Shown one piece after another: positions 35,779 through 59,478 of a stretch of 64,000 nucleotides of DNA. Origin of the DNA: Lepidodermella squamata (taxonomy: Eukaryota; Animalia; Gastrotricha); NCBI GenBank assembly GCA_047495785.1, contig JBLDXI010000042.1, positions 2,480,001 through 2,544,000 on the forward strand, in the 5' to 3' direction. The position numbers and the translations under genes were made by a program. How positions within the stretch are numbered: position 1 is the stretch's first letter; the number at the start of each line of letters is the position of its first letter. The notes beneath the pieces are model-generated. The model saw only the letters and a program-made list of their open reading frames with translations, searched no databases and was not told where the DNA came from.

Positions 35779-36695
35779 TTATCCGACGTGACATTCTCTG
35801 AAGCAAGGAGGGCACATAGATGGCTCGCCTTCGCAATCACCACAGAAGTGTACAGTTCCGGGCGGTCTTTTAGTTGCAATGCCAGTGAAGCAATTCTTCA
35901 GCCAACACACCTTACAGAGATGTCGAATGCCTTTCCTTTGACACAAGCGATGACCGGGTGTGACGATCGACCGTATTGCGCCAACCACCGATATCGAAAC
36001 GCCACGAGACTTCGAATAGGCGAATTCACGACTATTCTTGCAAGACTTCGATGCCAAGAGGCGCACAACGTATTGAGCCTTCCTGAATAAAATATAAATA
36101 TTAGTATTTTTAAATAAATTTTTTAAATAAATAACGTTTCCACTTCAGACGTCTTATGCTTGGGGAAGCAGTATTGGCAAATGTATGGCTTAGAAAAGCA
36201 GCTATTGCAGTAATAAGCTGATATCTTCACGGTCCACCCCGGCCGATTTTCCTTCATACAATTTCGACAATTCGATTTCCCGTATTTACCATCGCTGTTT
36301 TCACTCCTAATCATAACATGGACGTCACTCTGGAAAAAAAGATGACGTCTCTGACGAGGAGCCGCTACTATCCCGTTGGGGTGCAGTTTTCCAAAACATT
36401 GGCGGCACATCGGCGGACTTCCAGGGCAATTAGCGCAGTACAGATTAGTTCGTCTTCTTTTTGAACGATGAGAAAACGTTTTACACGGCAAACATGGTCC
36501 AGTAACGCTATTCCCCGATGGCCTTGAGGTTGTGTTCAGGAGCAATAGGCGGTGAGGTGGATCAAGCGGACCTGAAACGCTCAAACCTGAGCTGCCGAGA
36601 TATTTACCAACGCTAACATCGACATTTTCTTCCTTCACACAAATTTCGGGCTTCACACGAATAGACAAATCCAATAAGTCTCCTTCCGCTTCCAT
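35779..36695 (-). CDS. Array gene G1: LLDLS motif + 3 CRDs; 2 exons
   Basis: MEAEGDLLDLSIRVKPE..; SEVET|KAQYVVRLLAS join; ends HFCGDCEGEPSMCPPCFRECHVG. Confidence 0.78.
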
Positions 36696-37036
36696 AAGTA
36701 AAATTAATTCCAAAATCTAAATTAAACAGTCAGTTTCTTAAATCTCATTAGTTTATCAAATTCTAGGTATCTCCAAAATTTAAATTTTAAAAATAATTTT
36801 ATTCTCATACAAGAAAGGGCGCGGATCATTTGCCCAAAATATTTCTGGTGCGAAAATAGATATATGTTGAATCGATAATTTTAGGATAATCTAAAATATC
36901 GATTGATATCGGAAAAATCGGAGTATAAGGGCACACATATATATGTAGTAGGAAATTTTACTTCTCAAGACGCACAACCTCACATTTCAATCTCAAATAC
37001 ACCTAAATGGTCAAAATCACAGAAGAAGTATATTTT

Positions 37037-38073
37037 TCAGGTTGCTTCCTTGTCAATTATAATATGACTGTCGACGCAGTTTCGGCAAATGCGGGGTTTC
37101 CCTGGGCAAGTTTCACAAAAATGTACCGTTAGACATGCCCTTTTCCGCGCAGCCGAGAATTCTAAGCCTTCCTCCACCCATTTATCGATACAACTCGCAC
37201 ACTCGAGCCGTTTCACACCTGGGCTCTGGCTGAGTTTCCCAATCACGTGATCTGACGGCTTAATAGCGGCTCGTGTTCCGATTGTTCCATCAGGGTGAAA
37301 GTGGGCGAAACACTGTTGACACATCGCCGGCTGGCCTTCACACGACGAACAGAAGTACTTAGTCTTTCGGCTCCCATTAAACTTGATGTCTTCGTCCAAG
37401 CATCGGGCTTTACACATTACACAACGAGTTCTTGAAAGATGACTCCATGTAAGGTGATGACCAGGCTCACATAGCGGCTCAGGTTCCCTGAAAAATTCCG
37501 TGTTGCGGAAATTAGAGAATTTCAGATTCTTGCTTCACCTGAAACTTACTTTTCAACAGGCGACGCGTTATGAGCGGGGAAGCAATTTCGGCAAATAAAA
37601 GGCTTTGAAAAGCAACTGCCACAATAAACTTGCGCTTTTCTGACTTGCGCTGCTCCTTTCCTGTTGATTGCTCTTTTGTTCTTTGTTCCTTCTCTTCTCT
37701 TTCTAATGCAGTTTCTGCAAAGTCTGTAAGCTGGCCTGCCTTTGCTGTCATTTCGCTGGGCCATTTTATGGACATCCGACTTGAACCAACGCGCTAGAAA
37801 ATCAAATTTCAACCGACGGAATGGAACAACAACTCCATTCGGGTGTTTCAAGATGAAACAATCCCTGCAAAAATACGGCTTCTCAGGGCAATCGCTGCAG
37901 TATAGACAGGTTTGTTTGCCATTACGACAAAGCGAGCACCTCCTGATTCGGCGCCGGCAACATCCGTCTTTTGTTTGCTTTATTTCTTCAGTGGCGATAA
38001 GGCGATGTGGCTCATTTATAAGCGTCCCCAGCTTGAAAGAACTTTCTCCTCTTGCAGTCACGGATGTTATCAT
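37037..38073 (-). CDS. Array gene F3: 4 tandem CRDs; intron 37488-37549
   Basis: Paralog of F1/F2 with the same intron position and phase. Confidence 0.8.
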
Positions 38074-38254
38074 ATTTCTGAAGTTTATTTCCGAAGTATA
38101 TTATGAATTTATTATATGATTTGTAACATCATAGCCTACAATCGAAACTAAATTTTCACAATCTGGAACAGGATTGAGAGCGGCCAAAAAGAATTATTGG
38201 GAAAGTTAGGAAAATTTGGAAAATATAGAATTGTCCTCAAAAATATAGGTCGAG

Positions 38255-38466
38255 TAGCTTGGCCGATATTTGTATGATATAACACGAGTAGGAATCTATA
38301 TTTTACGGTATAACATTCGTAAATCGTTTATATCTGAACTCGCCGTACTCGATTTACTCATCTCCACTCGTCTTCGACTCGTTCCGATTCGTAAATCTCG
38401 GTCGGCTCCGTTCAGATATAGACTCTTTACTCGTGCTATATCAGACAAATATAGCCGACAAATTAT
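38255..38466. mobile_element. Degenerate MITE with ~55-bp inverted arms
   Basis: gatatttgtatgatataacacgagtaggaatctatattttacgg pairs with ccgttcagatatagactctttactcgtgctatatcagacaaatat. Confidence 0.65.
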
Positions 38467-38709
38467 ATATGTATGTAGTTTTCAAATGCCAATGGTTACG
38501 TCTCCCTGATTCGTATCAATTTACCCGACGTGACGATCTAACAAATTCAAATGTCCTAATCGAAAATAAATTTTCAAAATAAAAAACAGGATTTAGTGCG
38601 GCAAAAAAATTGGGAAAATTGGAAAAAATAGGAAAAATTTATTCGATAAAATGTATAATATTCAGGTGTCTATTCTACGTCTCTCTGATTCGAAGATTAG
38701 AACTCAAAT

Positions 38710-39648
38710 TTATCCGACGTGACATTCTCTGAAGCAAGCAAAGCACATAGGCGGTTCGCCTTCGCAATCACCACAGAATCGTACAGTCGATACCGGCTTT
38801 TTCTTTGCACTGTCAGAGAAGCAATTCTTCAGCCAACACACCTTACAGAGATGTCGAATGCCTTTCCTTTGACACAAGCGATGACCGGGTGAGACAATCG
38901 ACCTTATTGCGTCAGCCACCGATATCGAAACGCCACGAGACTTTAAACCGACCAATTCACGGTTATTATTGTAGGACTTCGATGCCAAGAGGCGCAAAAC
39001 GAAGTGATCCTTCCTGATCAGCATGAATACATGTAATTCGAGAAGAAGTTGGAGAATTTTCGTAACTCACGTTTCTACTTCAGAAGTCTTGTGCTTGGGG
39101 AAGCAGTAATGGCAAATGAAAGGCTTAGAAAAGCAGCTGCTGCAGTAAAAGACTGATAGTTTTGTTTTCCACCCTGTTCGTCTTTCAATCGAACAATTTC
39201 GACATCTCGTTTGCACACTTTTTCTATCGCTTATTTCACGCCTGAGCATAACATGGACGTCACTCTGAAACAGAAGATGACGTCTGGTGCCCGAAACTGT
39301 TATTATTACACCGTTAAGGTGCAGTTTTCCAAAACATTGGCGGCACATCGCCGGACTGCCAGGGCAATTGGAGCAGTATCTGATAGTTGACGTGTAACGC
39401 GGGGGTGATAATTTTTTACAAGGCAGACATGCCTTCCGATCGCGTAGTCCAGTTTCTTTTGACCACGAATCGAAGGACAATAGTTGGTGAGGCTGGTCAG
39501 GCAAACTAGAAACGCTATGAACTGAGAGATCGAGAGATTCAGCAACGCTAGCATCGAAACTATCTTTCTTCACGAAAATTGCTTGCGTTACTCGCTTACT
39601 AGACAAATCCACCAAGTCACCTTCGTTGCCCGTTTCCATCAAATCCAT
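38710..39648 (-). CDS. Array gene G2: LVDLS/SLDLS motifs + 3 CRDs; 2 exons
   Basis: Paralog of G1/G4; SEVET|KDHFVLRLLAS join. Confidence 0.78.
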
Positions 39649-40075: not shown

Positions 40076-40184
40076 AATTGAACCTACCGAGAGAATACTA
40101 AGGGAATACTCTATGGCTAGCCATGGAGAAATAAAATTTCCCCCCGATCTGGAACCCCGAGTGAGTTTGGCGCAGCCAAACGAA

Positions 40185-40806
40185 TCGAGGGGTTCCAGAA
40201 GCAAGCGGGGCACATGGGCGGTTCACCTTCGCAGTCACCACAGAATCGTAGTCTCGCTCGGCTTTTTCTTTGCACTGACAGTGAGGCATATCTTCAGCCA
40301 ACACACCTTACAGGAACGCGGCTTGCCTTTCCTTCGACGCAACCGATGACCAGGAGAGACGACCGACCTTGTTATGTCAGCCACAAATATCGAAATGCCA
40401 CGAGACCTCAAATAGGCCAATTCATGCCTACTTTTCACAGGATTCGACGCCAACAGACGCATAACAGATCGATTCTTCCTGTAATGTAGAAAGAAACATT
40501 GCGATATAAGGTATGAAAACGCGCGTAACCCACGTTTCCACCTCAGACACCCTATGCTTGGGGAAGCAGTATTGGCAAATGTAAGGTTTAGAAAAGCAAC
40601 TGTTGCAGTAGAAGTCTGCCCTTTTCACCGTCCCACTCGGCCGTTTTCATCGAACAACTACGACACTTCGATTTCATGTAGTTACCGTTGCTTGTTTCAT
40701 GCCTCAGCATAACATGAACATCACTCTGGAACAGAACATGACGTCTGGAACCCGAAGCTGTTATTACAGCGTTAAGGTGCAGTTTTCCAAAACAAGCCCG
40801 GCACAA
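40185..40806 (-). pseudogene. G-type CRD pseudogene, 5'-truncated and frameshifted
   Basis: G-type homology is split over three frames (ORFs 40588-40806, 40428-40628, 40235-40462). Confidence 0.75.
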
Positions 40807-40961
40807 TAAGCTCCTGCCCAGTTTCCAAAAAGTATATTCAAATTTTAACGATTTGTCATATATAATAACCTAAAATCGAAAAGAAAGTTTCACAATGAAA
40901 AACATAATTCAGAACGGCCAAAACAACGATTGCGAAAGATATGAAAATTTGGAAAAATATA

Positions 40962-41132: not shown

Positions 41133-42049
41133 TTATCCGACGTGACATTCTCTGAAGCAGGGAGGACACATAGATGGCTCGCCTTCGCAATCACCACAGA
41201 CTTGCACAGTCAAGGTTGGCTTTTTCTTTGCACTGCCAGTAAAGTAACTCTTCAGCCAACAGACCTTACACGGACGTGACTGGCCTTTGCTTCGACGCAA
41301 GCGATGACCGGGAGATACTACCGAGGTTATAACGTCAGCCATCGATATCGAGATGCCAAGAGAGCTCAAATAGGCCAATTCACGGCCATTCGACATGGTA
41401 GACTTCGACGCCAATATACGCCTGATGTATTGATCCTTCCTAAAAAAGCATATATTTAGATTAGATAATGTTAAACCACTCGCGAAACTCACGTTTCCAC
41501 TTCAGAATTATTGTGCTTGGGGAAGCAGTATTGGCAAATAAAAGGCTTAGAAAAGCAGCTATTGCAGTGAAAAGCTGATAGCTTCACGGTCCGTCCCGGC
41601 CGATTTTCCATCGAACAATTTCTACAGTATTTACCGTCGCTTTTTTCATGCCTTATCATAACATGAACATCACTCTGGAACAGAAGATGACGTCTCTGAG
41701 GGGAAGCTGCTATTATCATACCGTTAGGGTGCAGTTTTCCAAAACATTGACGGCACATCGCCGGACTTCCAGGGCAATTAGCACAGTATCTGATAGTTGA
41801 TCGGTAATGTGAGGGTGATGAATTTTTACAAGGCAAACATTGCTTCCGATTGCGTTGTCCAGTTTGTTTTGACCACGAATCGAAGGACAGTAGGTGGTGA
41901 GGCTGATCAGGCGAACCAGAAACGCTATGAACTGAAAGATCGAGAGATTCAGCAACGCTAACATCGATACTTTCTTCCTTCACAAAAATTTCGGGTTTTA
42001 CACGAATGGTTAAATCCAATAAGTCTCCTTCGTAGCCCGTTTCCATCAT
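41133..42049 (-). CDS. Array gene G4: LLDLT/SLDLS motifs + 3 CRDs; 2 exons
   Basis: Paralog of G1/G2; SEVET|KDQYIRRILAS join. Confidence 0.78.
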
Positions 42050-43110: not shown

Positions 43111-44282
43111 CTACAATTCTTTAGAGCGATGGTCATCGAAACAGATCCTGCATATGAACGGTTTGTCCGGGCATGTATCGCAAAAATAGTAAGACCGGTT
43201 TGTCATTCGACGCGCGACTTTCGGCTCAAATCCTTGCGCCTCAAATTTTTTCACACAGTCAACGCATTTATAGGTTCTCGAGCTTTTCTTCCCAGGCACG
43301 GCAGGAGTCTTCTTCAAGATGTGACCCGACTGCCACGTGAAACGCTTCCCACTGACAAGCGGCTCGATTTTACCGTCTTCATGTGTGCTAATGAAACATT
43401 GCTGACACATCGGCGGTTGACCTTCGCAGTCAGCGCAGTAATACAGCGTATTGTGTTTAGTGTCAGATTCATCGCCCATCATGGAACGCATCTTTAGCTC
43501 ACAAACTCTACATTTGCGAGGCTTCTTTCCCGGTCGAATGCGGAGATTGTGCCTGCCTTTCACAAGAAACAGCTGGCTGAATGAAGCCACTGGGTTCGGA
43601 GCATCTTCCAGTTTACTGGCATCATTATTCAGTGAGCTCAAGTGAGCAACTTTTAAGGGAGACAATTTCCCAGCCAAAAGCGATCGAATGTTGTCATCTG
43701 AACTGAAAAATAAGTAGCTTGTTATCAATAGAAATTATTTTTTTATTCAAATTACACTTCAACTGCTGAAGCTTCGTGACTGGGAAAGCAATAGTGGCAA
43801 ATGAAAGGCTTTGAAAAGCAACTGTTGCAGAAATACGCTGTGCTCTTGACCTTCCAATTCTCATCTCCCCTCGTCGGGCAATATCGGCACGGTTTGAAAA
43901 TTCGATTACCATTCTCATCAAGTTTCTCAATCATTTCATGGGTTTCAGACTTGAAACATTGTTTAAGAGAGAATCTACTTCTGATTAATCCGTTTGGGTG
44001 GCTCTGTTTGAAGCAGTCTATGCATAACCAAGGCTTCCCAGGACAGTCGGAACAGAGCATGACAGTTTTTCGGGACGTGAGTGATTCACTGCCAGGGCAT
44101 AAAGAGCTACCACATCTTTGTGATTTGTGTACCTGAAAGCCTATCCTTTTCCCGGACATTCCGTCACCTGCAACGAGCCAATGACGGCTGCCGGTCGAAA
44201 ACGAAGCAGATGACAAATTTGATGGCTGAGGATTCACAGAGAGAGCCTCCATTTTCGGCTTTTTCTTTCTCAAATTATACAT
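43111..44282 (-). CDS. Array gene H1: basic NLS-like start + 4 CRDs; 2 exons
   Basis: MYNLRKKKPK; CSDCPGKPWLCIDCF, CNSCFSKPFICHYCF, CADCEGQPPMCQQCF, CDTCPDKPFICRICF. Confidence 0.8.
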
Positions 44283-44350: not shown

Positions 44351-45524
44351 TTATTTATTTACTGGCTTTTTATTGTGATCATCGAAACATTTACGGCAAA
44401 TGTACGGCTTTTCAGGGCATGTATCGCAGAAGTAACTCGAAGAATTGCACATCCTCCTCGCAACGTTTTCGGCTATACCTTGAGACATCCATTTCGGGAC
44501 ACAGTCGACACATTTGAAAGTTTTTGATGTCCCTTGGGGACGGTTTAGCTTCAGAACGTGGCCCGACTCCCAGCTAAATCGCCGCCCACCTTCAACGGGT
44601 TCTATCGTACCGCCCTCGTGAGATTTTACGAAACAGCTGGAACAGATAGATGGCTTACCATCGCAATCCGAGCAATAATAGATAGTAATGGGTACATAGG
44701 ACTTCAATTTTCCTTCGCCAATCAGCTTTATTCTACAAGCCCTACATTGCCGATACTGCTTATTAGGTCGGACTAGGAGGCGATGGCTCTCTCGAATTAC
44801 AGTCAATCCATCTGGTTTTGATACAGCAGCGGCAATTTTTGACGGAACCAGAATTTCATCCGTCAATAGGGATCGATAATAAACTTCGGACCTGAAATAA
44901 AATATTTAAGAAAATTGAAAATTGGAAAATCACCCTATATTACGTTTCAACATCGCTTGTCTTGTGAGCAGGAAAGCAGTGACGGCAAATATAGGGCTTC
45001 GAGAAACAGGAGCTGCAGTAGTACGAACTTCTCTTTACCACCCAGTTTTCATCCTTCTTAGAACCACAATCGCGGCAATCCTTGAAAATCAACTCTCCGC
45101 CATCATCAAATTCTTCGAGCATTACATGATTAAGTGAGTCAAACACCACGTGCCGGGGCCGCGGGGGTTCGATAACCCCGTCCGGGTGATATTTCTTGAA
45201 GCAGTTCTCGCAAAACCAAGGCTTCGCTGGGCAATCGCGGCAAAACGTGCAAGTTAGGCCAGACTTACCCCGTAGGCACTTCGAACTCGCGCATTTTTGC
45301 AGGAGACGCGTACCCTTTTTATCTGATCTATCGGTAGCAGCCAGACGGTGAGGCCCAGGAGAAGGGTTTGCCGTTTCCGATGATTCCACTTCAGATTTCA
45401 GAGGCAAAAGGGTTGAGTTTTCATCTATGGTAGAAGAACTGTTAACGTTTCCAACTCTTCCACTTCGCGACAAGTCCAATGGCTGAATGTCAGTCGAATC
45501 ACCGGGTAAATTATTATTTTTCAT
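44351..45524 (-). CDS. Array gene H2: PLDLS motif + 4 CRDs; 2 exons
   Basis: QPLDLSR; same four-CRD order and intron position as H1 and the F-type genes. Confidence 0.8.
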
Positions 45525-45762: not shown

Positions 45763-48700
45763 TTAAAAATTGGCATAAGCAGTCAGACAGAACAAAAAGA
45801 CCAGTTTAAGTTCGCAGGCTGCCGTCGGTATTGACCCTGAAGTCTCCATCTTACGAATTTTCAACAACTCCTGGTCTTCGCTATCTTCATAGTTGAACTT
45901 CTTCCAATCCCATTGTTGAGTAGTCGGAAACAATTGCATCGCGAAAGCATAGTCATCGAATTTGATCTCTTCACTTGAATTTCGCTCCGTTATCGAAATT
46001 ACGAAAGAATTCAAATCTTGCGGATAAACGGCGACAGAAACATGCAGGTCGTTGGAGGCTTTCAAAGGAAATTCACTGTCATACAAAACCACGCCACTCT
46101 CATCGCGATAAACAATCACTCGCGGGCTGCAGACTGTTTTATCGTCGTAGCAAGTGAAGACAAAATGATCGCCCAAATCAACAGTTACAAGTTGAGTTCG
46201 AGCTTGACCAGCTTCGTAAACCATGTCCCCGTTAAATTTAGACTGATAAGCTCGAACAATCGTCGGAATCATGAATGTTTCACCCTTTGTCGTGAAACTG
46301 CACGCCGGCGGGCCCTGAACTTTGATCAAATTAAACTGAACCGGCTTGTTATTCGCATCGGTTATAGCGAAGACGCCCCAAGACCCGGCTACTAAAGGCC
46401 GAGATTTAACCGCGAGCTTCGAGCCTGATAACACCGCTTGAACCTCGCCGTCATTCGGCTGGAGAGATTTACCAACCGACGAGTGGAGATACTGCCAATT
46501 TGCAGCGTTTGTGACGTAAATCGGCAAAATAAAATTGGTCGAGCCACTTGCAAGATGATGAATCTGAAGATAGACCTCGTCGAAACTCTCGTAATTTGCC
46601 CAACTTTTTAGAATCAATCGTTTTTTGAAATAGTAACCATACGTATCCTCTCGACATGACTTATCGAAATCGCCAGTAAGTTCATCCTGGGAACAAGAGC
46701 AGCCGCCTTGGTAAATTAAACACTTTGAGAGACCGAAATTGAAGAAAAATCCAGAACATTTCGACTCGAGTTTATCGCATTCTTCCTGGCAGTCCTTGGG
46801 AATTTTTGCCGTGGTTATTTCGACGGCGTTATCTTGACATTTCGTGCAGTCCTGGGCGAATTTGTCGTAATTTTCAGACTCGGCATAGGACGTGTAGTAG
46901 CAAACTGGTACGTCGCAAAAATCAGGAATAATCCGCCTCGAATCCGCCTGCACATAACACCACGGGGCGTTGTAGCCCGGGCCAGGTAAAATTCGGCAAT
47001 AATTAGCCACGGCATCTGCGGGCAAAGTCTGATTCAGTAAATTCAAAGCAACTCGCCAGTCCAAACACTTCAATTTCCGACAAGCAGACCGACTTTTCAC
47101 ACCCTCATACTTCACATCCGTTGCTTTGAACAAATGGCAATCAAAAAGGGACCTGCCGATGGTTGGATGGAAGGTTGGTAAAATCAACAGCTCGACAACT
47201 AATTCGATTTTCTGCTGTCGTTTGAAGTCAGGATCGCCGATGGTGAAAGTGAATTTGTGAAGTCCAGCGTATTTTCTGCGGATAATTTCCACCGACCAGC
47301 CGGGAAGTGGCCGCGAGTCAGGGATTCGAAGATCAGCTCGAAACCTGTCGTTATTATTGTCGAATTTGAAAACGAATGGGGAATCTTGCCGATCAGTTTC
47401 ATAAATTAGCGGAAGGCATAGCGCCCCGTTTGGCGACTGGCAGAACCCAGTTTTGCGAGAAAAAGGCTGAACGAGAGATAGCTGGACGGAAAATATCATA
47501 GTGGTACCGGGTTCGAACCGGAAAATAACCCGACGGTTTGTAGTAAATGGCTGCCCAATTTGCCGCATAGTGCCGTTTTCTGCATCTCGGTTAGGCCAGG
47601 CTTGAATCAAAGTTCGGCAAACTGCATAGGTAGGCTTGCTATCGAAAACGGGGAACAGTTCCAACTTCGGATCGTAGGTAACAGTTGCGAACAAATCGAC
47701 CGAATTCGGGATCGGCTTTGGGACCAACAGCATGTAGATTGAAAATTCGCCGACTTGTTCACCTCCAAAACCGATTTTATATCGAGCTTGAATAGTATTT
47801 TCGTCCAATACCTTGAACTCCTGTGGATTTTCCGTATCTCTCCGACCTTGGTGATGAAAAATGGGAACGATAGTTAACCCGGCGATGTTAACACCCGTGC
47901 AAATGAAATCAAGAACTAGGACGGACGGGTTATTTGGCGGGCTTATCAATTTGACCCCTAAAGAGCCGAGAGTCGAGCGGAGGAGTGTTTCGTTCAACAT
48001 AACTCGGCAAGAAATTTCGGGGGTTACGGAGATTTTATGGTACTCGAACCTTTCATTGGCTTGACAACGGTAGAGGCCAGTGTCCTTAGGATCAGCTGAT
48101 CTGTTCGAGCCGCCGAGTTTCAGCTCGAATCCTAACCTCATAACCGAGTTTGGACCTTGAAATTCATCGTCAATGTTGAGAAAACGTTGCCAAATTGGGT
48201 CGAATTTACGCCAAAGTTTGTCCAATTTCAAATAATGTCTCGCACCCTCAAGCAACTGGCAAGGAATTACGATATCTTTCGCATTTTCCATGTAATTGTG
48301 ATATTCGTAATTCACCCAATCAACATTATCATTTGGCGAATAGGGTCCAGGATTTTCGAGTTTTTGATAGTAATGAACAACAGACGAATAACTTCCGCAT
48401 TTAAACTGAGACGGGTCGTTGCAAACACACCGTGTAATGAAGCAATTGCCATGTTCGCCTTGGCCGATTTCGTCGAACATGAATGATTTGCAATCATCCC
48501 TAAGATTGAGACAGCGCTGAGCGCAACTCCCCAGAGTCATGCCACCATAAATCTTGTGACCATCACTGTACATGCTGGACTGTTTTACTGGTTGAATATC
48601 CAAACCGGGATCGTGATGCCAAAAGACGTTAGAGCAATCGCATCTGCCGAAACGATGCGAGAAATAGTGTCTCAAAAATTTGTCGCCGGCTGAAAAAAAT

Positions 48701-51147
48701 GCAGTGAAAATTTCAATTCGAAATGAAAATTTGGGAGAAAACTAACATCCGCAAAACTCGGGAGCGCAATACATCAACTCGTCGATTGAATCTTCTGTGG
48801 TAATGCAAAATGGCACACGCCCGTCAGAAGGGTTTCGGCAATAGTTAGCAACGGCATCGCGATTCCATTTTTCAGGAATATTCTGACGCCTAGATAATAC
48901 AATTCTTCAATTATTGAAAAATTAAGCGGCGGAGATTTTACCAAGATTGCGGCCATTTGTTCCAATCCGGTAAAGAATTCCAAAATCGGCAGGGCTCTCC
49001 ACAAATCGTTCGGTTCATTGAACCGGCATACTCCAAGCCTTCGGGTGTTCGTCTGCAATCCTTCTCAAAAACTAAAAAAAGTCGGTAAAATCAGCAGGAA
49101 AATAATCGATAAACTGAACAAACTGCTTTCTTTGGCCTTCGAAAGTTTGACCGAAACTTGAGGAGAGTTAAAAGCTTGCAATTCACTTCCACTCTGGTCA
49201 GAGAACCAAACCGAGAAGCTTCCAGTAAGACCATCCCAGAGTGATTCATCCATTTCATAAGCGGATTGAAACATCCGAGGATTGCCGAAGTATTGAAGAG
49301 AAATATTAACGTAACCTTCGTCCACAACACTCGACTCAATTTCAATCATTTTAAACGGCATTTGATCAAATTGTGAATTCCGCTCGCCCTCAACTGATCG
49401 ATTTTTGTAAGTCCATTTTGCAAAAGATTGACTTTTTTCGATAGTATCTTGGCCAAATCGTAAATCAATTCCAAAGGTGCAGTCGGTTTCATTCCGACAA
49501 CTTTCGATTTCTTTGACAAAACAGCGATATACAACGTTGAGAGGCTGAAATTCTGGTACGGTGAATTGGACAACTTTCATTCCGAAATTCGTAACATTTT
49601 CAGCGACGACAGAACAGAATTTTTCCATCTGCTGCTGCAACTCGCTAAAAAACTGACACTTGTCACGTGATTTGCCAAAAAAGTAGGTCGGGAAATTTCC
49701 TTCGAAAAACGGAACGGAACTGCTGAGAGTCGTCAAGTAGTTTTCGAACGAATATAACACAGCTATTGTGTAGCGAACTCCTTGCGTCACATTCGCCAAT
49801 TTGTACCGAAATTCAATAGCGCTGAGATCGAAACTGTACTCGGCAGCTGTTCGGGTTGCCACGATAGGCGAAGGCTGGTACATCAAAACGTCTTCATCAG
49901 CGAAAACGATGAACTCTGGGTTGCAAATCAGCCATTTTGCGGTGGATAAGATTTTGCAAGCATGAAAACTTCGCTGGTAGCGCAATTTTATGCTTATTTC
50001 AACTAAGGAATTCGGCAAAATTTGCTCAAGACAAGACTCATCGCCAAAAATTACTGAAACTCCAAAGGTTGACCAGCTTCTACCGTGATCGATATAATGA
50101 ATTGATTCATTAACTTTGGCCGAGAACTCGAGCAAAGGTGTTTCAAGATGGGAAATTATGTGATATTCGATTCCAGCAGGAACAGAATTTCGAGAATAGT
50201 TCAGTCGATAAATGCCCTCGTGTTGATTCATTCCGTCAGAAAAATTCAAGTAAGCCCGGCCTTTAATCAAACCATGCCTCGTGAAATGAGCGAAAGCAGC
50301 GGCTGGAGGTGAAGTGACTTCCTGGTTGATGATATCACGTTGGAACATGTATTCCTCATCAATCAGTTTGCTCCAATTAGTTTCGATCCAATCTTTAGGC
50401 GCAGAAATGAACAGGCTTGAAAGCGAATAATTTGACCACCTCTTATCGACAAAAGTTTCATCAACAATCGGGATGTTGAAATGTGGAACCAGATCTGAAT
50501 CAAATAACATTGATCAGCTGACATAAATCAACGAAAAAAATATTACCTTCCATGAAAGCTAGTCCACGAAGCACGTACCAGATGCGAATACTCCCGAGAA
50601 TAGTATTGTTCAATTCCGAAAATTCCTGGCTTCTGTACAGAAGAGAAACCTGGTACTCCCCATTAGGATTTTCGCGTAATGCAGTCAACCGGTTGAAATT
50701 GTACTTGGTCAAATGAAAGGAGATCGAAAATTTTGAAATTTCGGAATCATGGGAAACCGCAATGCTGCGGCTCTCTCCGAGTCCAAGGTTGTCGACAGTA
50801 ATATCCTTCAGCAGACCGTTACTTTCAGAAAATCCAGACGCTTCAAATTCAATGAAATTATTCCGAGAAATAATGAAGATCGGCTCGCAATAGATCCGTT
50901 CGCCATCCTCGCACAACTTATGGGGAAGCTTTTCAAGGGAAAATCTAATGATCAGTTTCACATCTTCCCGCTGCGGCCAAGCCGAAAAAAGGACCTGAAC
51001 CGACGGACTCGGATAATCGGTGATTTTGTAACCAGATACAAGTACTCGAAATTCAATATTCGAGATCAGGTCATTTTTCTTCTCAGAACTGACTACGAAT
51101 TGTGAGATTAGAAGCGAAATCAGGACGGTAGTAAGTAACCATCTCAT
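45763..51147 (-). CDS. Large secreted/GPI-type kringle-PAN(apple)-Ig-like mosaic protein, 1723 aa; exons 51147-50547, 50494-49124, 49071-48942, 48889-48747, 48689-45763
   Basis: Four 52-57 nt GT-AG introns give a 5172-nt open frame; signal peptide MRWLLTTVLISLLISQFVVS; kringles DCRRTPEGLEYAG..NYCRNPSDGRVPFC and DCHLF..YEG..NYCRILPG..APWCY; PAN-like CAQRC..CKSFMF..C and CQEEC..CSGFFF..C; Ig-like DTGLYRC; hydrophobic C-terminus. Confidence 0.75.
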
Positions 51148-51216: not shown

Positions 51217-53121
51217 TCAAATTTTGACCGGGCTAATCATATGTTCCTTGACACAAAATGAGCAAATAATAGGCTTTCCAGCGCAAGAATCGCAGAATCG
51301 ATAGCTGGTATGGGCCAGTTTTGAAGTCAAGCTCGGTTCGACGCCCTGCGAACGAAGCAACTCGAGACAATCGTGGCAAGGAAACGACCGGCGTTTCTCC
51401 GGCTTTTCACCCGGTCGCAGTTCTAGCTCGCGCATGACGTGGCTCGTTTTCGAACTTGGCGAGTCAGTTTTGACAGGCTGCAAAACGTGAAAAGCACGGC
51501 ACGCCTCGCAAACCCAAGGCCGATCAGCACATGTGGCGCAGTAGAACATGGTCAATTTAGGACGTGGGGCTTTTTTCGTTGAAATGCCAGTTTTAGCTCT
51601 GAAGCGCAACACGCAAAACAAGCAAGGTTGAGCGTAGTTATTCTTCCCACCGCTCTGTTCACGAATCGGAAATTTGTGGAAAACGTGACCAGCTGATTTC
51701 GGGTACTCGGCGATGATAGCTGTGTTTACGGGAGTGCCGTCAAATTTGTTCGACTGAATCTCGAGGCTGGACGAAGCAGGAGGGCGAGTTTCGGAACGCG
51801 GTAGCTCGAAGACTGGCGGAGCTGAGGTGAAACTTGATGTTGAAGGTATATCGCTGCTGGAGGGTGGGTCGAGAACTTCGATTTTGAACACGCTGCCATC
51901 TTCATCGTCGCTGACGAGAACAAAGTTGGGCGAAGCAGGCTGAAATAACAACTTATGAGAATAATTTAACATTTAACCCTTTCACAGCCGAATTTTCTAT
52001 CTCAGGAAGATAAAACATTTGACAGCATTTCTAAGGGTTCTCGGAAGCCCTGATCACGATTTTGAAACCCGCTTGTCTTTGTCTATCACCGTTAAGACTG
52101 TGCGAAAAGTGGTCAAAATCGCCCTGTCGGCCCAGCTGATTTCAGGCCTTTTTGTGCACCCTGATTTCTTCATCAAATGCTCCCGACTTTGGATTTTGCG
52201 ATTCTAAATTACTCCCTAAGGTCCCTAAAATCCGCGATTTCGACCACTTAACTAAAATCAAGGCAGAGCCCTTAGTTTTTGTCGAAAACTGATGAGAAAA
52301 TTTACACACAGGTCAATGGGACTATGCCAAACACTGTAGTATTTTTTGTTTGACCGGATAATGAAATTGGGTTAACTTCATTTCAAATTGAAAAAAATCA
52401 AAATTTTCAAATGACTATAATTTCAAAATGGTGCGAGTTAGCGGTTTGATTGTTTCAAATTCTTGTAGCCAACATCTAAAAGTAAAATGGCTCAAAAGGA
52501 CGATCAAAAATTCATCAAATTGAAATGTTGGTGCGTCGTCAAAACCGAATTTCCGAAATCGCACTTAAGGCCGTGAAAGGGTTAAAAAATTAAATAATGA
52601 AAATTCCAGCTTAATAATTTTAAATTTTGATGAAGAGCTAAAACAGCTTTCTGCATTAGCAAATAAAAAAATCCCACAAGTCTCGCTGTTGTAAAAAAAA
52701 ATAAAAAAATTTGAGTTCTCACTTGGAGTTTAACATCCTCCTCGTTGACTTGAACAGGAGATTGCGGAGTTTTCGTCGGTTTCGCCGGTTTGATTGGAGG
52801 TTTCTTTTTCGATAGCCTATCGTAACGCCCATAGGAATTCCGCGGCATGCGTCGATTGCCATCTCCTGAGAAGGCCACCTCGAGTCCAGCACCCATTGTC
52901 GACGTAGGCAAGACTGGCGGCAGAGCCCCGCCCACCGGAGCCGGGCAAATTGTCAGATGGGCAACGAGGTTATCGCGTTCCGAACCTTCGGCAATGTAAA
53001 TTTTGCAGCCACGAGGACACCATCGACCCGTTTGACTCGAATGAGCGGAATGATGCGCCTGGAACTCAATAGGATTGTTCGTTACAAATTGACAATCGTT
53101 ACACAGAAATCGTGAAGACAT
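51217..53121 (-). CDS. Array gene I: C2H2+C2HC module + 2 CRDs; intron 51940-52722 contains a piggyBac-type MITE
   Basis: VKLQ|PASPNF phase-0 join; MSSRFLCNDCQFVTNNPIEFQAHHSAH..WCPRGC..HLTIC. Confidence 0.78.
51977..52581. mobile_element. Non-autonomous piggyBac-type element (605 bp)
   Basis: TTAA|CCCTTTCACaGCC ... GGCcGTGAAAGGG|TTAA: 13-bp TIR (1 mismatch) starting CCC, TTAA duplication, no transposase. Confidence 0.88.
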
Positions 53122-53170: not shown

Positions 53171-53848
53171 TCAACTAAATTTCCCTAATTTATGCGACTC
53201 GAAACAATCAATGCATAGAAATGGTTTGTCTTCGCAGGTTACACAATAGCCTGAGGTTAGATGAGCACGCGGTTCCGCGCTTCGAGTCAGGCTGATTCTT
53301 GCAGGGCAATCTCTGCATCGATACCGCTTCGTCGATTCGATCCGAGCCCATTTGTGTAGAATCAACGGCACCTTTAGGGCAGATTTCTTCATTGTAACTA
53401 GGTGGGACTTCTGACAATGCCCACACAACCACGGCCGTTTTTCGCAGGTCGCACAATAATAGCTGGTCATGGTTACCTCTTCCAGGGCTCTGAATTGAGC
53501 CGGCTTCATGCGAGATAGACATGGGACACATGGAAATTTCCGAGGCTCTGACGTGCCAGGAATTAATATTTTTGTCAACTCAAAACGATGCTTTCCACTC
53601 AATTTTTCACCAGTCGTGGATTTCGCTACCAGTATCACGTCAGATTCTGAGCTGGACGAAGCGATGGACGCTTGTTTTTGAACAACTGAATTAGGATCCG
53701 GCAGAGGACAAGTTCGCAGATGATCGAGAATAGCGAAACGGCTCGCGTTTTCGAAAACTTTGTACCCGCAGCCGCGGGGGCAAGTTTTGAGAACAGGTGC
53801 TTTAACGGAATCACTAGACGATTTATTCAATCTGCTAGATCTTTTCAT
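53171..53848 (-). CDS. Array gene J: C2HC half-module + 2 CRDs, single exon
   Basis: CPRGC..LDHLRTC; CVPC..TSYYCATCEKRPWLCGHC..H; CRDC..TSGYCVTCEDKPFLCIDCFESH. Confidence 0.8.
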   Translation of the reverse strand: MKRSSRLNKSSSDSVKAPVLKTCPRGCGYKVFENASRFAILDHLRTCPLPDPNSVVQKQASIASSSSESDVILVAKSTTGEKLSGKHRFELTKILIPGTSEPRKFPCVPCLSRMKPAQFRALEEVTMTSYYCATCEKRPWLCGHCQKSHLVTMKKSALKVPLILHKWARIESTKRYRCRDCPARISLTRSAEPRAHLTSGYCVTCEDKPFLCIDCFESHKLGKFS

Positions 53849-53924: not shown

Positions 53925-54754
53925 TTATTGTTTAACAATAGGAACAATAGCATGCGAGGGGAAGCAATCCGAGCAAATAAACGTTTTTTCAGCGGCACAC
54001 AAGCAAAAACGAGTGGTTCGTTTCCTGGGTGTTTTCTGACACTCTCTGCATGTCTCGCTTTCCTCCCCAGTTAACCAAACATGCCCGTTAATGATACCAG
54101 GTTCTTTCGAGAACTATGACGAAAAAATCAGAAAAACAAGCGAACATATTTTCGGGTAAACAATACCTTCATCAGAACTAAATTTTCTGGAGTAATGCCA
54201 TGATTTTCAATATAGCAACTTCTGCATGAATGAAGATTCTTGTCACATCCGCGGCAGGTGAATCGTGTTGTTGTTGGGAGAAAGTTTTCAGCCGCCATCC
54301 CATAACGCCGAAACTTATCCCGGCAAAAATTGCAAGGCTTGGACGCAAACGCCTTCCAAAGAGAATGCTCTTTTCGTTTGTGATTCGAAGATTTTGGAAC
54401 CACCTCAGGTTCATGAGTAAGATCGACCGGAATCGGTCTATCAGAAGAAATATTCGAATTCGATTCAACTTCGTCGGCATAGCTCGAAGATATGTAATTC
54501 AGAGAATTCGATTTTTCCGATATTTTCCGAAACTTCGGCAGCGATTCCATTGAAAAATTATGGCACAAATTGTTGTGTTTTTCAAGAATTTCATGGTCTT
54601 CAAAATAAAATTTGCAGTTCAGTGGGCACCAGTAACCAATTTCAGCCTCATGCGCAGTTAAATGCTCCATAAATTGAACCAAATCGTTAGTCGCAAAACG
54701 ACACTCATTACACCGGAGAACGTCCGAGTTACAACGGCGGTTCATTATGGTCAT
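53925..54754 (-). CDS. Array gene K: C2H2+C2HC module, PVDLT motif, 2 CRDs; intron 54114-54166
   Basis: Exon 2 (not in the ORF track) reads FSKEPGIINGHVW..CREC..TRFCLCAAEKTFICSDCFPSH..*; start could also be the ATG at 54745. Confidence 0.75.
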
Positions 54755-54793: not shown

Positions 54794-55537
54794 TTATTTA
54801 ACCGGAGTCTTAGCGTGTAAAACAAAGCAATTATAACAAATATAAGTCCGCTCGCTCTTACAAGAACAAAATCGATTCGTGAGCCTCTTCGTGCACATGA
54901 TACACTGTTTAGAGTTCTTCGCAATGTCTCTAGCGAATCGCCAAACATGTCCATCCAAAATTCCAATTTCATAGCTATTCTGTTAGGAGAAAGTTTAGAA
55001 AAATTACTACAAAAAATAGTCGAGGCGAACCTTGAATATCAAGGTGTATTCTCTCCACATATCACCGTGATTTTCGATAAAACAACTGCGACACATCGGC
55101 TTTGATACTCCGCAACCTATACACGAGCAACGAGTTTTGATCGGACGAAATTCATCCGATAGGCCGTATCGAATCAGCTTTGCGGGGCAGAACAAGCACG
55201 GTAGATACTGCCTCCAGATTTTCAACCCATGTTTCGGGCCGGTTGAAGGATCTAAAGGCATCTCAACACTATCTTCCATTTCCGACTCACTTTCGTATAT
55301 TGTCGATAATTTTTCCAAAGAATTAATTTTCTTAGAGCTGCATGCCGCCACAGGGTTTGGTGGCGAGCATACAGCGAAGTGCTTCATGAGGCTATGATCA
55401 TTTTCCAAGTAGAACCCGCAATTCAATGGGCAAAAGGCACCGCTTCCCGATTGATGGGCAGATACATGCTGCGAAAAATGGGCAAAGCTATTAGTTGCAT
55501 ATCGGCAACGCTTGCATTCATTAAGGATGGCTAACAT
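54794..55537 (-). CDS. Array gene L (paralog of K): C2H2+C2HC module, 2 CRDs; 2 exons
   Basis: IFK|NSYEIGILDGHVW..CIMC..NRFCSCKSERTYICYNCFVLH..VK*. Confidence 0.75.
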
Positions 55538-55678: not shown

Positions 55679-56333
55679 TTAATCGAAATCGACTTCAATC
55701 AACGAGAAAGAAGACATCGATCTAGCAGCGCCAAGTCGGAAATGATCTCGGAAGCAGTTGACGCATTGGAAATCTTGACGTGGGCAGGTCTCGCATTTGA
55801 AAACAACACGGCCATCTTCGCATTTGCAAATTCGAAGTTCAGAAACATGACTCCAGCTGTGGCCAGCACATTCAAAAGCCGAGCGGATCAACTGCAATAA
55901 ATACATTTCAATCGATGAAATCAATCAGAAACTGCCATACCTTGCCGTCTGATGAATGAATTTCGCTGAAACAAAGATCGCACAAGAAAGTACCTTTAGG
56001 GCATCCACCACAAAACCGAGTCGATTTGCGAAATTTGGGCAAAGCATCGGCCCAAGAATCCGACCCAAGAAGAAATTTCGTGATGCAGTAGACGCAAACT
56101 CGATCCGGACCTTGAACGAACCCTGTTTCTTCTTTCAATTGGTGTCGAAATTTAGCTCGAGTCTTGACAGTTACGACTTCACCAGGAGTCAACTTTTGCA
56201 AAATGACAACTGGGGATTTCGAGTCCAATTTTCCAGAAATCTTCGGGTTCAACGCGCTTAATTCGGCGTCCGATAACTTGACGACTTGAACAACAGGTTG
56301 TTTCGAGAAGTCAAAATTGATGAAATCATTCAT
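55679..56333 (-). CDS. Array gene M: PVVQV/PVVIL motifs + 2 CRDs (second divergent); 2 exons
   Basis: SDGK|LIRSAF join; CVYC..TRFCGGCPKGTFLCDLCFSEIH. Confidence 0.7.
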
Positions 56334-56905
56334 TTTCTATCAAGGGTCTAAAAATTTGTTTCAGTGAAATTGAGGTTCGAAGGCTAAATTTGAGCAATCT
56401 ATCGATAATTAATTCCGATTTTTGTGATTTAGAACTTTTTGAATAAACGCTTTTAGTAAAATTTTGAAACCAATTCTGGGGATTTCAAATTCTCAAATTC
56501 AGCGCTGGAACCCTGTATTTAAGTAGCGCACTTGGCACACGCTACAATTTACTGCTGGAAAGTCTCACGAGACAATATCAAAATTTGAGCGATAAGGGCA
56601 AGCAAAATGCGGAAATTAATCATGCACAACCGTTCAACCAATAACGTGTCCTTTGAAACAAGGCATGCAGAGTTCAGGAATACCAGGGCAAGTCTTGCAA
56701 AATGTAAAAAAATTGCCCCTCAATTTGCAACGCGAACAATTCAAGAAGTTAACCGTGTTCCATCGCGAGCGACAGGGGTTAACGGTAAGAACTCGCTTGA
56801 CAGCTAACTCGTGACCGGCATAGGTAGAAATTGCACCAATTTGGATTATCGGAAAATCGCCCTGAAAATCATCGGTATATAATTGTCAAGATATTTCCCT
56901 CAAGC

Positions 56906-58715
56906 TTATACTTTAGTTTCAGTTTTGTTATGAACCACAAAACACTTCAAACAAATCTTGGGCGATTTCGGGCAGGAAATGCAGCGGTACTTAGCGGATC
57001 GTGTTTTCTTACAAACACGGCATCGAAAGCTGCTGCCCGATGTTGCCTTTATCAAATGATTCGGCGACGGCATGCCGTTATCCAATGGCACATTCTCCCA
57101 ATTAACAAATTGTGAGGGAATTTGTCTACAATGCAATAGATCAGGTAGATTTGTCGTAAGGTCACAGACTTCGGATTGCACCATTTTCGACGAATCTTCA
57201 ATTCCCTCAGCAGCCTATTGATAAGTTTTCAAAAATGAAAAAAATTAAGGCGACTTTGACTTACCGTCATTTCCTCGAAACCATCATCGCTTATTTCGAC
57301 TGGCGTGATTTCAGGATCGCAATTGAAGCCAGACGATGATCGGCTCTCGGCCACAAGACGTTGCACAGCAACCTTAACAAAATTAAATGAAATTTAACAT
57401 AAAAATCTGGATACCTACAACATATGGCTGCACAACTTCCGGGGACTTTCCCGATTTCAAGCTGATATAAGTAGAGCGTGTCCCAGAATTTCGATTTGGC
57501 AACTTTTTGTAGGAAATTCAACAATTTTTTTTTAACCCGGAAACCCCCGATGGTAACTTCGGTAATTTTCGGTATTTTACCTGGTTTGACCAAATTTCTC
57601 CAGACTTTTTTAATCTCAAACAGGTGACATGACTGACTTCATTACTGTTGTCGGGATTTCTTGAATATTTCTACAAATTTTCTGGCCATGAGATGTGACT
57701 TCGTCTCTCATTTTAATGTTTCTTCACCCTGTCTTTCCTTGCGTTACTCATGGGACACGCTGTATATGACTATATTTGTACAGGTTGGCCAAAAAGAGCT
57801 GCAGGGGGCAAAGTTTCGAGAAATTTAAGAGTTTCATGGGCAAAAGAATGCTTGAAATTCTTCAATATCTTAAAGCCCCTCATTAAATTGATGCGCAGTC
57901 AATGAATTTCGCCCCCTCTTTCGGCTCTTTTTGGCCACCCTGTAAAAGGCATATTGTGAGTTACCACAAGGAAATAATTAACCCGTTTAGACCGGCATCT
58001 AGGATTTTAATGCTACGGTCATAATCTTTTCAGGAATTAATGTTGGTATCATAAATATGAGGAAAAAATGTTGGTGACCCCATCCCAACCGTTTCCGAGT
58101 TACGCAATGTCCCATTTATGGGACGCTCGGTCATTCTTATAGGCAAATTTAGAAATAACCATATAAATCATAATTTTGTCATACTAGTGACTCAGGGCGT
58201 CAATAAAAGAGTGACGAGCCAAACTATCTCTATCATCATTTTGGGTGAACGAATAAGTCCAGAAAGTCCAGACAGCGTGCAAACGAAGCGAGGAAAAGTT
58301 TTGGATTGCTAGCGGGAAAAAATAATAAAAAATGTTTGGAAATAGGGATTTTTTCTGGAAATTTTCAAACTATTTACAGGGAGCGCTCCATTTTCGCATG
58401 TTCTGCAGCCGTGAATTTACCCTGAATTTATACCAAAATAAGCGTTGCTCATCCTTTTTTCACGGAAGAATAGGAAGATAAGAGACGGAAGAGGAAGAGC
58501 CTACCAATGTTGTCTCCGATTCACGACAGAGTGTTTCGATCGATAAAATTCGAGGCCGCTTCGAAGAATGTTTCCGAGTCAAATCCAGAGGCTCATCAAT
58601 CTAAGCGAGAGAGAATAAATAATAATTTAAAGAAAGAACAAGAAACGTGAAAACTTGCCATTGGTTTCAATGTAACATCAGACGTGAAATCAAGTAACTC
58701 CAGTTCGAAGTTCAT
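56906..58715 (-). CDS. Array gene N: multi-exon, PLDLT motif, 1 C-terminal CRD; middle exons uncertain
   Basis: MNFELE..LKPM|(GC-AG)IDEPLDLTRK..; later VVLQRLVAE..EEMT|AAEGIEDSSKMVQ..HLI..CRVC..AKYRCISCPKSPKICLKCFVVH. Confidence 0.5.
57474..57762. mobile_element. Tc1/mariner-type MITE
   Basis: TA|gAGCGTGTCCCA ... TGGGACACGCTG|TA. Confidence 0.7.
57781..57942. mobile_element. Tc1/mariner-type MITE (162 bp)
   Basis: TA|CAGGtTGGCCAAAAAGAGC ... GCTCTTTTTGGCCAcCCTG|TA. Confidence 0.85.
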
Positions 58716-58954
58716 AATCAATCGATTCAATGTATCTGACCTATTTAAAACCGATTTGCCAACTCAATTTGCGAAAAGAAGCGTTACATTTTTAATCGAA
58801 AAAATTGAGTTTTCGCCAAACAGAAGATGGTCAGAAACAACAAAGGCAACATGCATCAATTCTAATAAAAAAACTGAGGCTACGCTTTTCAAATCAACCT
58901 GTTTGAGCTGAAACAAGGCGCTGGGACTTGGGTTGAAATACAAAAATCACCCGA

Positions 58955-59478
58955 TCACATGTGTTTTAAGAAACAGCTTTTGCATAACGTCGGCTGCGAA
59001 GGGCAAGTTCCGCAAAAATATGAAGATTTGCCGAAACACATTACACAATTTCGTTTTCTGATGGTGTCCCATTTTAGCCCGCACGATCGTATTCGGCGCT
59101 TCAACATCAGTAAGTGTCCTTCCCAGCTTCCAGTGGCAACGACTTTGACGACACGAGTAACGTCCTAAAACGAAACGAATTCAAAAATAACAGTGCGTGC
59201 GTTTCTTTCGCAGAAACTATTACCCCGGCTGTGCGGTCATGTTGTTGAAAGCAACGTAGGCATATTGCGGGGCGAGCAGTCGAGCAGTTAATAGCAGTTT
59301 TACCATCGGGCCCACATATCGTGCATGGCTCGCCATGCTCGGCGTGTTGGTAAAGTGCGCGCAGCCGCGGCAGAATTTTCGTGTCAGGGAGGACAGGAAT
59401 TTCTAGAATTGTCGACCATTCGATTATTTGGGGTGTATTATTCCTGGTTTTTAGCGACAGGTCAAGAGGTTCGGCCAT
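58955..59478 (-). CDS. Array gene O: N-terminal PLDLS + 2 CRDs (first degenerate); intron 59165-59223
   Basis: MAEPLDLSLK; TAG|DVTRVV..HLL..CVMC..SYFCGTCPSQPTLCKSCFLKHM*. Confidence 0.72.

Follow-up and report, generated by a model that had tools for sequence, protein, structure and literature searches.

CtBP-recruiting zinc-finger repressors include KLF3/BKLF (PVDLT), Knirps (PMDLS), Snail, ZEB and ZNF217/ZNF516 (PxDLS). Their CtBP-docking peptides follow an ELM-type consensus, P-[LVIPME]-[DENS]-[LM]-[VASTRG], in which Pro1 and Leu4 are essential, and which continues with a basic residue (PxDLSxK/R). Domesticated relatives of the piggyBac cysteine-rich domain (CRD) are known from the PGBD genes, PiggyMac and Tetrahymena LIA5, and THAP is another DNA-binding domain of transposase origin that now serves in a cellular factor. 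In KLF3, PVDLT is the CtBP contact, and changing its DL to AS abolishes recruitment (PMC3874204). Fly transcription factors have PxDLS repression domains that require CtBP and retrieve it in pull-downs (PMC9890238). The piggyBac CRD binds TGCGT sequence-specifically and contains a DNA-contacting loop (PMC5861402).

The window, i.e. the whole 64-kb stretch of animal, non-human DNA analysed, holds an array of about 22-25 CRD genes and pseudogenes (25063-60146, minus strand), delimited by core CRD motifs and ORF lists and broken up by unrelated long ORFs at 45766-51147. All 43 core CRD motifs of the ~35-kb array lie on the minus strand, and 44 complete CRD units were extracted from it. Each protein carries one to four tandem CRDs, in some cases together with an N-terminal C2H2-like finger.

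By profile comparison, these CRDs are remote relatives of the C-terminal DNA-binding finger of piggyBac transposases. Alignment of the family CRDs with piggyBac transposase CRDs in hhalign gave a probability of 98.5% (E 3e-15), and a search with the family profile finds the C-terminal CRDs of genuine piggyBac transposases; PF13842 is present in 44 of the 72 matches and PF13843 also in 10. With the CRD of P0034 as query, tblastn hit the window at E 2e-8, while PF13842 (zf-Tnp_2) was not matched at E <= 0.1 in the eight family proteins and two neighbouring ORFs scanned. The top Foldseek match of the modelled CRD is the piggyBat transposase 9c0f, weak at E 0.3, with the PiggyMac CRD at rank 12. 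The units follow the ligand pattern H-x-L...CxxC...CxxC..P..CxxCF...H, with the six Cys invariant and the flanking His near-invariant. Ligand spacing and a basic first loop are shared with the piggyBac CRD, whereas the ligands differ, being C5HC2 in T. ni piggyBac and C6H with an additional His upstream in the array units. The first loop, basic in 40 of the 44 units, resembles the loop by which the piggyBac CRD contacts DNA (PMC5861402). As the CRDs are homologous to this sequence-specific domain (PMC5861402), the array proteins plausibly bind DNA. We infer a nuclear role as well, which would make them nuclear DNA-binding proteins of a family that is lineage-specific and evolves fast. Unlike piggyBac transposases, they are tandem CRD proteins encoded by an array of genes; no DDE transposase catalytic domain was found in the window, which four transposases match by the CRD only. 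An assignment of the array genes as transposases was rejected, the genes being stand-alone CRD arrays without a catalytic domain.

The window contains four instances of the strict motif P[LVI]DL[ST], all on the minus strand and within the CRD array, and three of them lie in solid exons, in genes H, O and K. Gene H (44354-45524, minus strand), delimited from the sequence and its splice sites, codes for four CRDs in exon 1 (44945-45524) and exon 2 (44354-44892), separated by a 52-nt intron (44893-44944, GTAATA...TTTCAG); PLDLS is found at residues 15-19 (45468-45482, minus strand) in the context DIQPLDLSRS. Gene O (58958-59478, minus strand) has two CRDs, the first with one Cys missing, and consists of exon 1 (59225-59478), a 59-nt intron (59166-59224) and exon 2 (58958-59165). 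Its PLDLS occupies residues 4-8 (59455-59469, minus strand; MAEPLDLSLK). Fusion of the upstream 'P' ORF to O in frame at the nearest acceptor was ruled out because an in-frame TAA lies just 5' of the O ATG. In gene K (53928-54754, minus strand), exon 1 (54168-54754) codes for a C2H2-like finger, a linker and a CRD, and exon 2 (53928-54114), after a 53-nt intron, for a second CRD. PVDLT at K residues 109-113 (54416-54430, minus strand) lies in the disordered linker and is identical to the CtBP-contact motif of KLF3 (PMC3874204).

The fourth instance, PLDLT (58577-58591, minus strand), is in the putative 'N' open stretch, 46 codons (58463-58600, minus strand) that are paralogous to the start of O exon 1 (BLASTP, 9/24 identical, E 3e-4). 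This stretch has ATT at the position of O's ATG, contains no in-frame ATG, and no CRD follows it within about 1.2 kb; a phase-compatible putative intron of 1.13 kb could join it to position 57372. That position belongs to the downstream 'N' gene proper (56637-57372, minus strand; two CRDs), with exons at 57265-57372, 56913-57213 and 56637-56862, a GTAAGT donor at 57264 and a 50-nt intron at 56863-56912. Its exon 57265-57372 has no start codon, so that one or more exons must be missing further upstream. The 'N' motif copy is putatively coding only and may be dead.

Related pentapeptides are found in the G genes (all minus strand). G1 (35782-36695), with three CRDs, has LLDLS at residues 7-11 (36663-36677; EGDLLDLSIR), G2 (38713-39648) has LVDLS at residues 12-16 (39601-39615) and SLDLS at a second site (39523-39537), and G4 (41136-42046) has LLDLT at residues 9-13 (42008-42022) and SLDLS at 41933-41947, a position without conservation in G1. 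Two further paralogs on the same strand carry altered versions: PLDPS in L (55244-55258), a paralog of K (54797-55537), aligns with PVDLT of K and looks like a decayed copy with Leu4 replaced by Pro, and I (43114-44282), the paralog adjoining H, has QPSNLS (44211-44225) in place of QPLDLS, its PSNLS probably also being a decayed copy. About 20 other paralogs are without the motif. In most instances the motif is followed by a basic residue (R, K).

Each pentapeptide listed in the original prediction was recovered at its coordinates on the minus strand. A location near the N-terminus, as claimed there, applies to H, O and G1/G2/G4 (residues 4-19), while K and L carry theirs in a mid-protein linker. 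The CtBP consensus accommodates PLDLS of H and O, PVDLT of K and PLDLT of 'N'. It does not extend to LLDLS, LVDLS, LLDLT and SLDLS, which have no Pro1, to PLDPS, which has no Leu4, or to PSNLS with Ser at position 2; the first five had been listed along with the CtBP-type motifs, but we do not retain them as such, as the defining Pro, or Leu in PLDPS, is missing.

The recurrence of PxDL[S/T] in the array exceeds chance. Six-frame translation of the 64 kb yields 4 strict motifs versus 0.41-0.44 expected, a count reached by 0 of 300 dinucleotide-type shuffles of the window. In the non-finger parts of the family exons (3362 residues) the strict motif is observed 3 times (0.03 expected) and [PLVI][LVI]DL[ST] 6 times (0.13 expected), and neither count was equalled in 20000 residue shuffles each; the motif had been chosen post hoc out of many possible known ones. 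The original prediction had proposed a comparison with a shuffled proteome as a check; against shuffles of the window and of the family exons, the motif is strongly enriched. The 72 remote relatives contain no strict motif in 13,400 residues.

The post hoc choice is among the points in favour of a chance match or a neutral relic, a pentapeptide left over from one ancestral N-terminus and without present function. Retention was judged from paralogs within the array, and these reduce to about three independent events: the 'N' stretch is a paralog of O across 24 residues, so its motif is not independent of O; G1, G2 and G4 (dS 0.35-0.72) are copies of one lineage and count as one event; and the G motif aligns with PLDLS of H. 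Moreover, judging by I and L, the motif can erode, and the family dN/dS of about 0.35-0.65 is only moderately below 1. On the other hand, the shuffles never reproduced the observed count. Comparison of H with the I, G and F subfamilies shows saturation at synonymous sites and N-termini that can otherwise hardly be aligned, so that exactly these five residues are unlikely to have been kept neutrally in three subfamilies of different architecture. The motif codons of H, O and 'N' differ synonymously, and the stretch shared by O and 'N', 38% identical as a whole, is best preserved at the motif. We therefore consider a functionless relic improbable. Of the earlier claim of independent retention in divergent paralogs, the retention across saturated subfamilies stands, but the independence is reduced by the shared descent of 'N' and O, of the G copies, and by the alignment of H with G.

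AlphaFold2 models of H exon 1 and of K place the motifs in predicted disordered segments next to folded zinc modules. The CRDs of H reach a pLDDT of about 90, whereas residues 1-55 remain at 51-60, and the motif residues 15-19 fall in a block with 51-54. In K the finger (residues 11-66) is predicted with a pLDDT of 77-86 and the CRD with about 70, while the linker (residues 67-137), inside which the motif residues 109-113 are located, stays below 50. Overall, the zinc modules adjoining the motif segments have pLDDT values of 70-96. For H and K, the low pLDDT supports the earlier description of the motif surroundings as unconserved and of low complexity.

A short hydrophobic peptide in such a segment could also be a SUMO-interaction motif (SIM), [VILP][VIL]DL[ST], with a hydrophobic beta-strand that would tie the proteins to SUMOylated chromatin factors instead of CtBP. 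The high-affinity SIM core of PIAS1 is VIDLT, of the psi-psi-D-L-T type (PMC3901395), and the array pentapeptides also fit this type. The array proteins resemble PIAS1 and RNF4 in being zinc-binding and in having a hydrophobic-hydrophobic-D-L-[ST] core within a disordered region. The G-type variants are closer to SIMs than to PxDLS, since LLDLS, LVDLS and LLDLT combine three hydrophobic residues with an acidic EGD upstream; by the alignment of G with H, one ancestral function may cover both types. Several other paralogs have hydrophobic cores beside Ser/Asp/Glu runs. However, the array motifs are followed mostly by basic residues (R, K), where strong SIMs have acidic residues or phospho-Ser, and the core of the P-type instances is weak, with just two hydrophobic residues. 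Generic SIM-like patterns are also not enriched in the family linkers (9 observed, 6.1 expected, P = 0.15), while the xxDL[ST] pentapeptide is. A SIM thus appears to be a doubtful explanation for the motif.

We favour, with a probability of about 0.4, that the array encodes DNA-binding proteins of which a subset carries a CtBP-docking motif and acts as sequence-specific repressors, with both CtBP as the partner and repression being putative. The subset would comprise H, O and K and perhaps 'N', while I and L would have decayed copies, and the motif would have roughly the form [DE]-x-P-[LV]-D-L-[ST]-x(0-1)-[KR] in a disordered N-terminal or linker segment. Docked in the PxDLS-binding cleft of CtBP, it would recruit this co-repressor and its histone-modifying partners to the DNA site picked by the CRDs, leading to repression. 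The known CtBP-recruiting zinc-finger repressors offer the closest parallel, as the array genes likewise code for zinc-finger proteins with PxDL[S/T] outside the fingers, in a region that is disordered (modelled for H and K). They differ in having piggyBac-type CRDs, putatively of the cross-brace kind, and an odd C2H2-like finger in place of classical C2H2 arrays, in that most paralogs are without the motif and one subfamily has Leu for Pro, and in that CtBP is a predicted partner of the array proteins. The G-type Leu variants are not confidently covered by CtBP docking. As their motif aligns with that of H, the ancestral motif may not have been a CtBP motif.

The original prediction took the family as a whole to be transcriptional repressors. 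The enrichment of the motif and the agreement of H, O, K and 'N' with the CtBP consensus speak for part of this claim, but with only three secure strict instances among about 22-25 genes it does not follow for the entire family.

Leu and Pro alternate at motif position 1 among the aligned paralogs, which is a poor fit to any single known motif class, and enrichment and retention argue for a function without naming any partner. The pentapeptide might hence be a functional short linear motif with another partner, such as a lineage-specific cofactor, or with another role, for instance as an export signal or a strand for self-association, and its match to PxDLS a coincidence. Against this, four instances agree in full with the experimentally validated consensus, down to the basic residue at its end, and the host architecture is typical of CtBP-recruiting zinc-finger repressors; we regard another partner as unlikely, if somewhat less so than a SIM or a relic.

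If CtBP is recruited, the array would show clearly how the DNA-binding domain of a transposase was made into a whole cellular repressor family, in parallel to the evolution of THAP and KRAB-ZFP proteins but with another type of finger and another co-repressor. KRAB zinc-finger clusters and THAP proteins are analogous only: they too are tandem, fast-diverging DNA-binding families in which a variable module for recognition is joined to a small element that recruits a co-repressor, the latter being putative in the array. The array has neither a KRAB nor a THAP domain, and the likeness is architectural and evolutionary, not homologous. By extension, the CRD-only family might serve in KRAB-ZFP-like surveillance, in which a captured transposon end-binding domain, multiplied, diversified and coupled to CtBP via PxDL[S/T], would repress piggyBac-like elements or genes near their remnants; we consider this very unlikely. 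If the motif instead binds SUMO or has another role, the stand-alone CRD family is still informative on recognition by piggyBac-type fingers outside transposition.

No close relatives or orthologs were found: a word search was blank, and among 1.84 billion (1.84e9) representatives of clustered proteins the best match to the family profile was at E 1e-8. The family may therefore mark a regulatory innovation specific to its lineage, within an animal group that has been poorly sampled. One of the remote relatives, P0029, joins KRAB with zf-Tnp_2.

In agreement with the original prediction, which had reported PxDL[S/T] pentapeptides of the CtBP-docking type in the array of genes encoding cysteine-rich domains (CRDs), all of these pentapeptides are present at their reported positions: PLDLS in the genes H and O, PVDLT in K and PLDLT in N, together with the variants LLDLS (G1), LVDLS (G2), LLDLT (G4), an additional SLDLS in both G2 and G4, and PLDPS in L. 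Translating the window in all six frames gives four instances of the strict form P[LVI]DL[ST] versus 0.41-0.44 expected, a count reached in 0 of 300 shuffles, and all four instances are located on the coding strand of the CRD array. In the family exons outside the fingers, the strict form was found three times (0.03 expected) and the broader form [PLVI][LVI]DL[ST] six times (0.13 expected), which none of 20,000 shuffles reached in either case. The motif is hence enriched, with shuffled sequence never matching the observed count, and an earlier, cruder sequence set gives an agreeing enrichment. The recurrence remains real when the post hoc selection from a few hundred known motifs is penalised. 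The motif is absent from the 72 remote relatives of the family (13,400 residues).

The individual matches are fewer and less independent than the suggested independent retention in divergent paralogs. The PLDLT of N lies inside an open stretch of 46 codons without an in-frame ATG, and the next ~1.2 kb contain no CRD. The first 24 residues of O are paralogous to this stretch (38% identity, E 3e-4), in which ATT replaces the ATG of O. It would represent a duplicate that has decayed or else an internal exon of the gene downstream; splice models joining it to that gene are phase-compatible, though candidates only. On either reading, the comparison indicates that the N motif is not independent of the one in O. 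G1, G2 and G4 form a single lineage, and the second motif of G2 and G4, SLDLS, which is not conserved in G1, is probably due to chance. PLDPS of L aligns to PVDLT of K, and QPSNLS of I occupies the place of QPLDLS in the neighbouring gene H; both look like decayed copies of the motif. This leaves about three independent occurrences, the architectural classes with the motif being the four-CRD protein H (with G), the C2H2-plus-CRD protein K (with L) and the two-CRD protein O (with N). A location near the N-terminus, as had been proposed, holds for H and O, but not for K and L, in which the motif is found mid-protein.

Residues 1-55 of H are predicted to be disordered (AlphaFold2, pLDDT 51-60), as are residues 67-137 of K (pLDDT < 50), and both segments sit between confidently folded zinc modules. 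Short linear motifs usually lie in disordered segments of this kind. The residue before the motif is often acidic, and a basic residue follows within 1-2 positions in H, O, N, G1, G2 and G4. Among H, O and N the codons of the conserved motif residues show synonymous differences, while the flanks are otherwise unconserved across subfamilies with saturated synonymous sites. It is possible that the motif is a non-functional relic; the predicted disorder, the common flanks, the synonymous codon changes and the unconserved surroundings together favour selection over neutral persistence.

For the CRD itself, Pfam scans of eight family proteins returned only sub-threshold noise (B-box, CHY, CoV NSP13 ZBD), and a word-index protein search with exon 1 of H was blank. 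As the length limits of that search might miss longer relatives, an exhaustive profile search was chosen. Among 1.84 billion cluster representatives it detected no close relatives (best E 1e-8) and 72 remote ones, 44 of which contain PF13842 (zf-Tnp_2, the piggyBac 'DDE_Tnp_1-like zinc finger'). In ten of the 72, PF13843, the piggyBac catalytic domain, is present as well, and here the family match is the C-terminal CRD. Four transposases match the window via the CRD alone, and never via the catalytic domain. A profile-profile comparison of 30 window units (single CRD copies) with nine such transposase CRDs gave a probability of 98.5% (E 3e-15), while a profile search against PDB sequences gave one insignificant match. 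For both CRDs in exon 1 of H the AlphaFold2 pLDDT is ~90, and a Foldseek search of this model against the PDB lists the piggyBat transposase first. A piggyBac-type fold of the CRDs is likely from these models; because the piggyBat match has an E of only 0.3, we stop short of calling it proven.

The CRD of the T. ni piggyBac transposase is a cross-brace zinc finger, which binds TGCGT via a basic loop (PMC5861402). In the alignment, each window unit has six invariant Cys with a single His upstream and another downstream of them, and in 40 of 44 units the loop corresponding to the piggyBac basic loop has a net positive charge. Across the units, which lie at 25063-59107 on the minus strand, the first and second Cys pairs are 5 to 28 residues apart, and the loop between them is strongly basic, with 22.6% K+R versus 7.7% D+E, as is to be expected of a diversifying DNA-contact loop. 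From these sequence comparisons we conclude that the family consists of stand-alone, multiplied piggyBac-type CRDs, and DNA binding would be the most likely activity of the proteins. In the remote relative P0029 (542 aa) a zf-Tnp_2 CRD occurs together with a KRAB box and a P2RX7_C domain; thus, at least one other lineage has joined a piggyBac-type CRD to a repressor module. Domesticated piggyBac genes and zinc-finger repressors with PxDLS motifs are already well known, while no description of a tandem family of solely piggyBac-type CRDs was found, the literature under the Pfam names comprising LIA5 and incidental mentions.

The four P-type instances in H, O, K and N fit the CtBP consensus, which in its extended form, PxDLSxK/R, includes a trailing basic residue. 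CtBP-dependent repressors are classically DNA-binding zinc-finger proteins that carry such a peptide in a disordered arm, and the CRD proteins resemble them as zinc-finger proteins, putatively DNA-binding, with the peptide in a predicted disordered arm. PVDLT of K is the exact contact motif of KLF3, and changing DL to AS in the KLF3 motif abolishes recruitment of CtBP (PMC3874204). In Drosophila PxDLS repression domains the motif is required, CtBP co-purifies and repression is CtBP-dependent (PMC9890238). Because of the consensus fit, the identity with KLF3, the Drosophila data, the trailing basic residue and the repressor-like architecture, recruitment of CtBP ranks first among the explanations, at a still tentative probability of roughly 40%. 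Another partner for the motif is possible. That H, O and K recruit CtBP is a good, testable hypothesis in view of the motif's enrichment, its setting and its exact matches, and to this extent the original prediction is supported; a repressor role for the whole family is more than the data allow, as most paralogs do not have the motif, several of the listed variants deviate from the consensus, and the retained copies are fewer and less independent than proposed.

Several of the variants listed as CtBP-type fail the consensus, as the Leu-type motifs of G (EGD-LLDLS) lack the defining Pro. These variants align to the motif of H and resemble the VIDLT core of the PIAS1 SUMO-interaction motif (SIM; PMC3901395), which speaks for the main rival, that the pentapeptide is itself a SIM. 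However, the residues downstream of the motif are basic, not acidic, and generic SIM-like patterns are not enriched in the family (9 vs 6.1, P 0.15 against shuffles). Hydrophobic cores beside Ser/Asp/Glu runs (e.g. VEISDDG, FVLVSDDEDG, SESDVILV and SVEIVQVS) are found in paralogs on the minus strand at 57265-57372, 51220-51972, 53174-53848 and 29437-29744. Such patches had prompted the idea of family-wide SIMs, which was dropped for lack of enrichment; a SIM is retained solely as a rival explanation of the pentapeptide.

The CRD array comprises ~22-25 paralogous genes and remnants, all on the minus strand at ~25.0-60.1 kb, with 43 copies of the core C..C(2-8)C..CF(2-5)H and 44 complete cysteine-rich units. 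A typical gene has two exons, separated by a ~50-nt intron, and two to four units; a subgroup (A1, B2, C2, E, J1, K, L and P) encodes a C2H2-like finger at the start of the protein. Recent copies in the G and F groups show dS values of 0.3-1.0 and a dN/dS of ~0.35-0.65, while synonymous sites are saturated between the H, I, G and F groups. A G-type pseudogene (40120-40869, minus strand) is broken across three reading frames, and between F1 and F2 an isolated CRD-coding exon remains (33426-33677, minus strand), the other gene parts being absent. ORF P (59736-60146, minus strand) encodes the C2H2-like N-terminal finger of the family, followed by a Pro/Gln-rich tail without a CRD; as a 5' exon of O it was rejected, since an in-frame TAA directly after the only plausible acceptor excludes that junction.

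Three consecutive long ORFs, unrelated to the family (215, 481 and 970 aa; 45766-51147, minus strand), split the array, with a signal-peptide-like start in the first, a hydrophobic tail in the last and Cys-rich PAN/kringle-like stretches. The 481- and 970-aa ORFs have no Pfam match, and a word-index protein search with the latter was blank, with length limits that could conceal longer kin; the three may form one large secreted or GPI-anchored orphan protein. The window is gene-dense and the genome compact, with introns in the array of 45-62 nt, features that set it apart from human DNA; these introns start with GTAA or GTGA and end with TTTCAG or TTTTAG. A single 471-codon exon (7861-9276, plus strand) encodes an endosomal-type, NHE6/7/9-like Na+/H+ exchanger with 50-57% identity to proteins from many bilaterian phyla and 71% to the environmental protein P0074; the source is therefore a bilaterian from a poorly sampled lineage. 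A complete gene for the metazoan signal recognition particle RNA (RF00017, 174 bits; 14843-15137, minus strand) marks the window as animal DNA. Further features are an exon for a Rho-family GTPase whose N-terminus is extended by a long Gln/Pro-rich segment (11219-11635, plus strand) and a class-C-GPCR-like ORF of 646 aa (21484-23424, minus strand).
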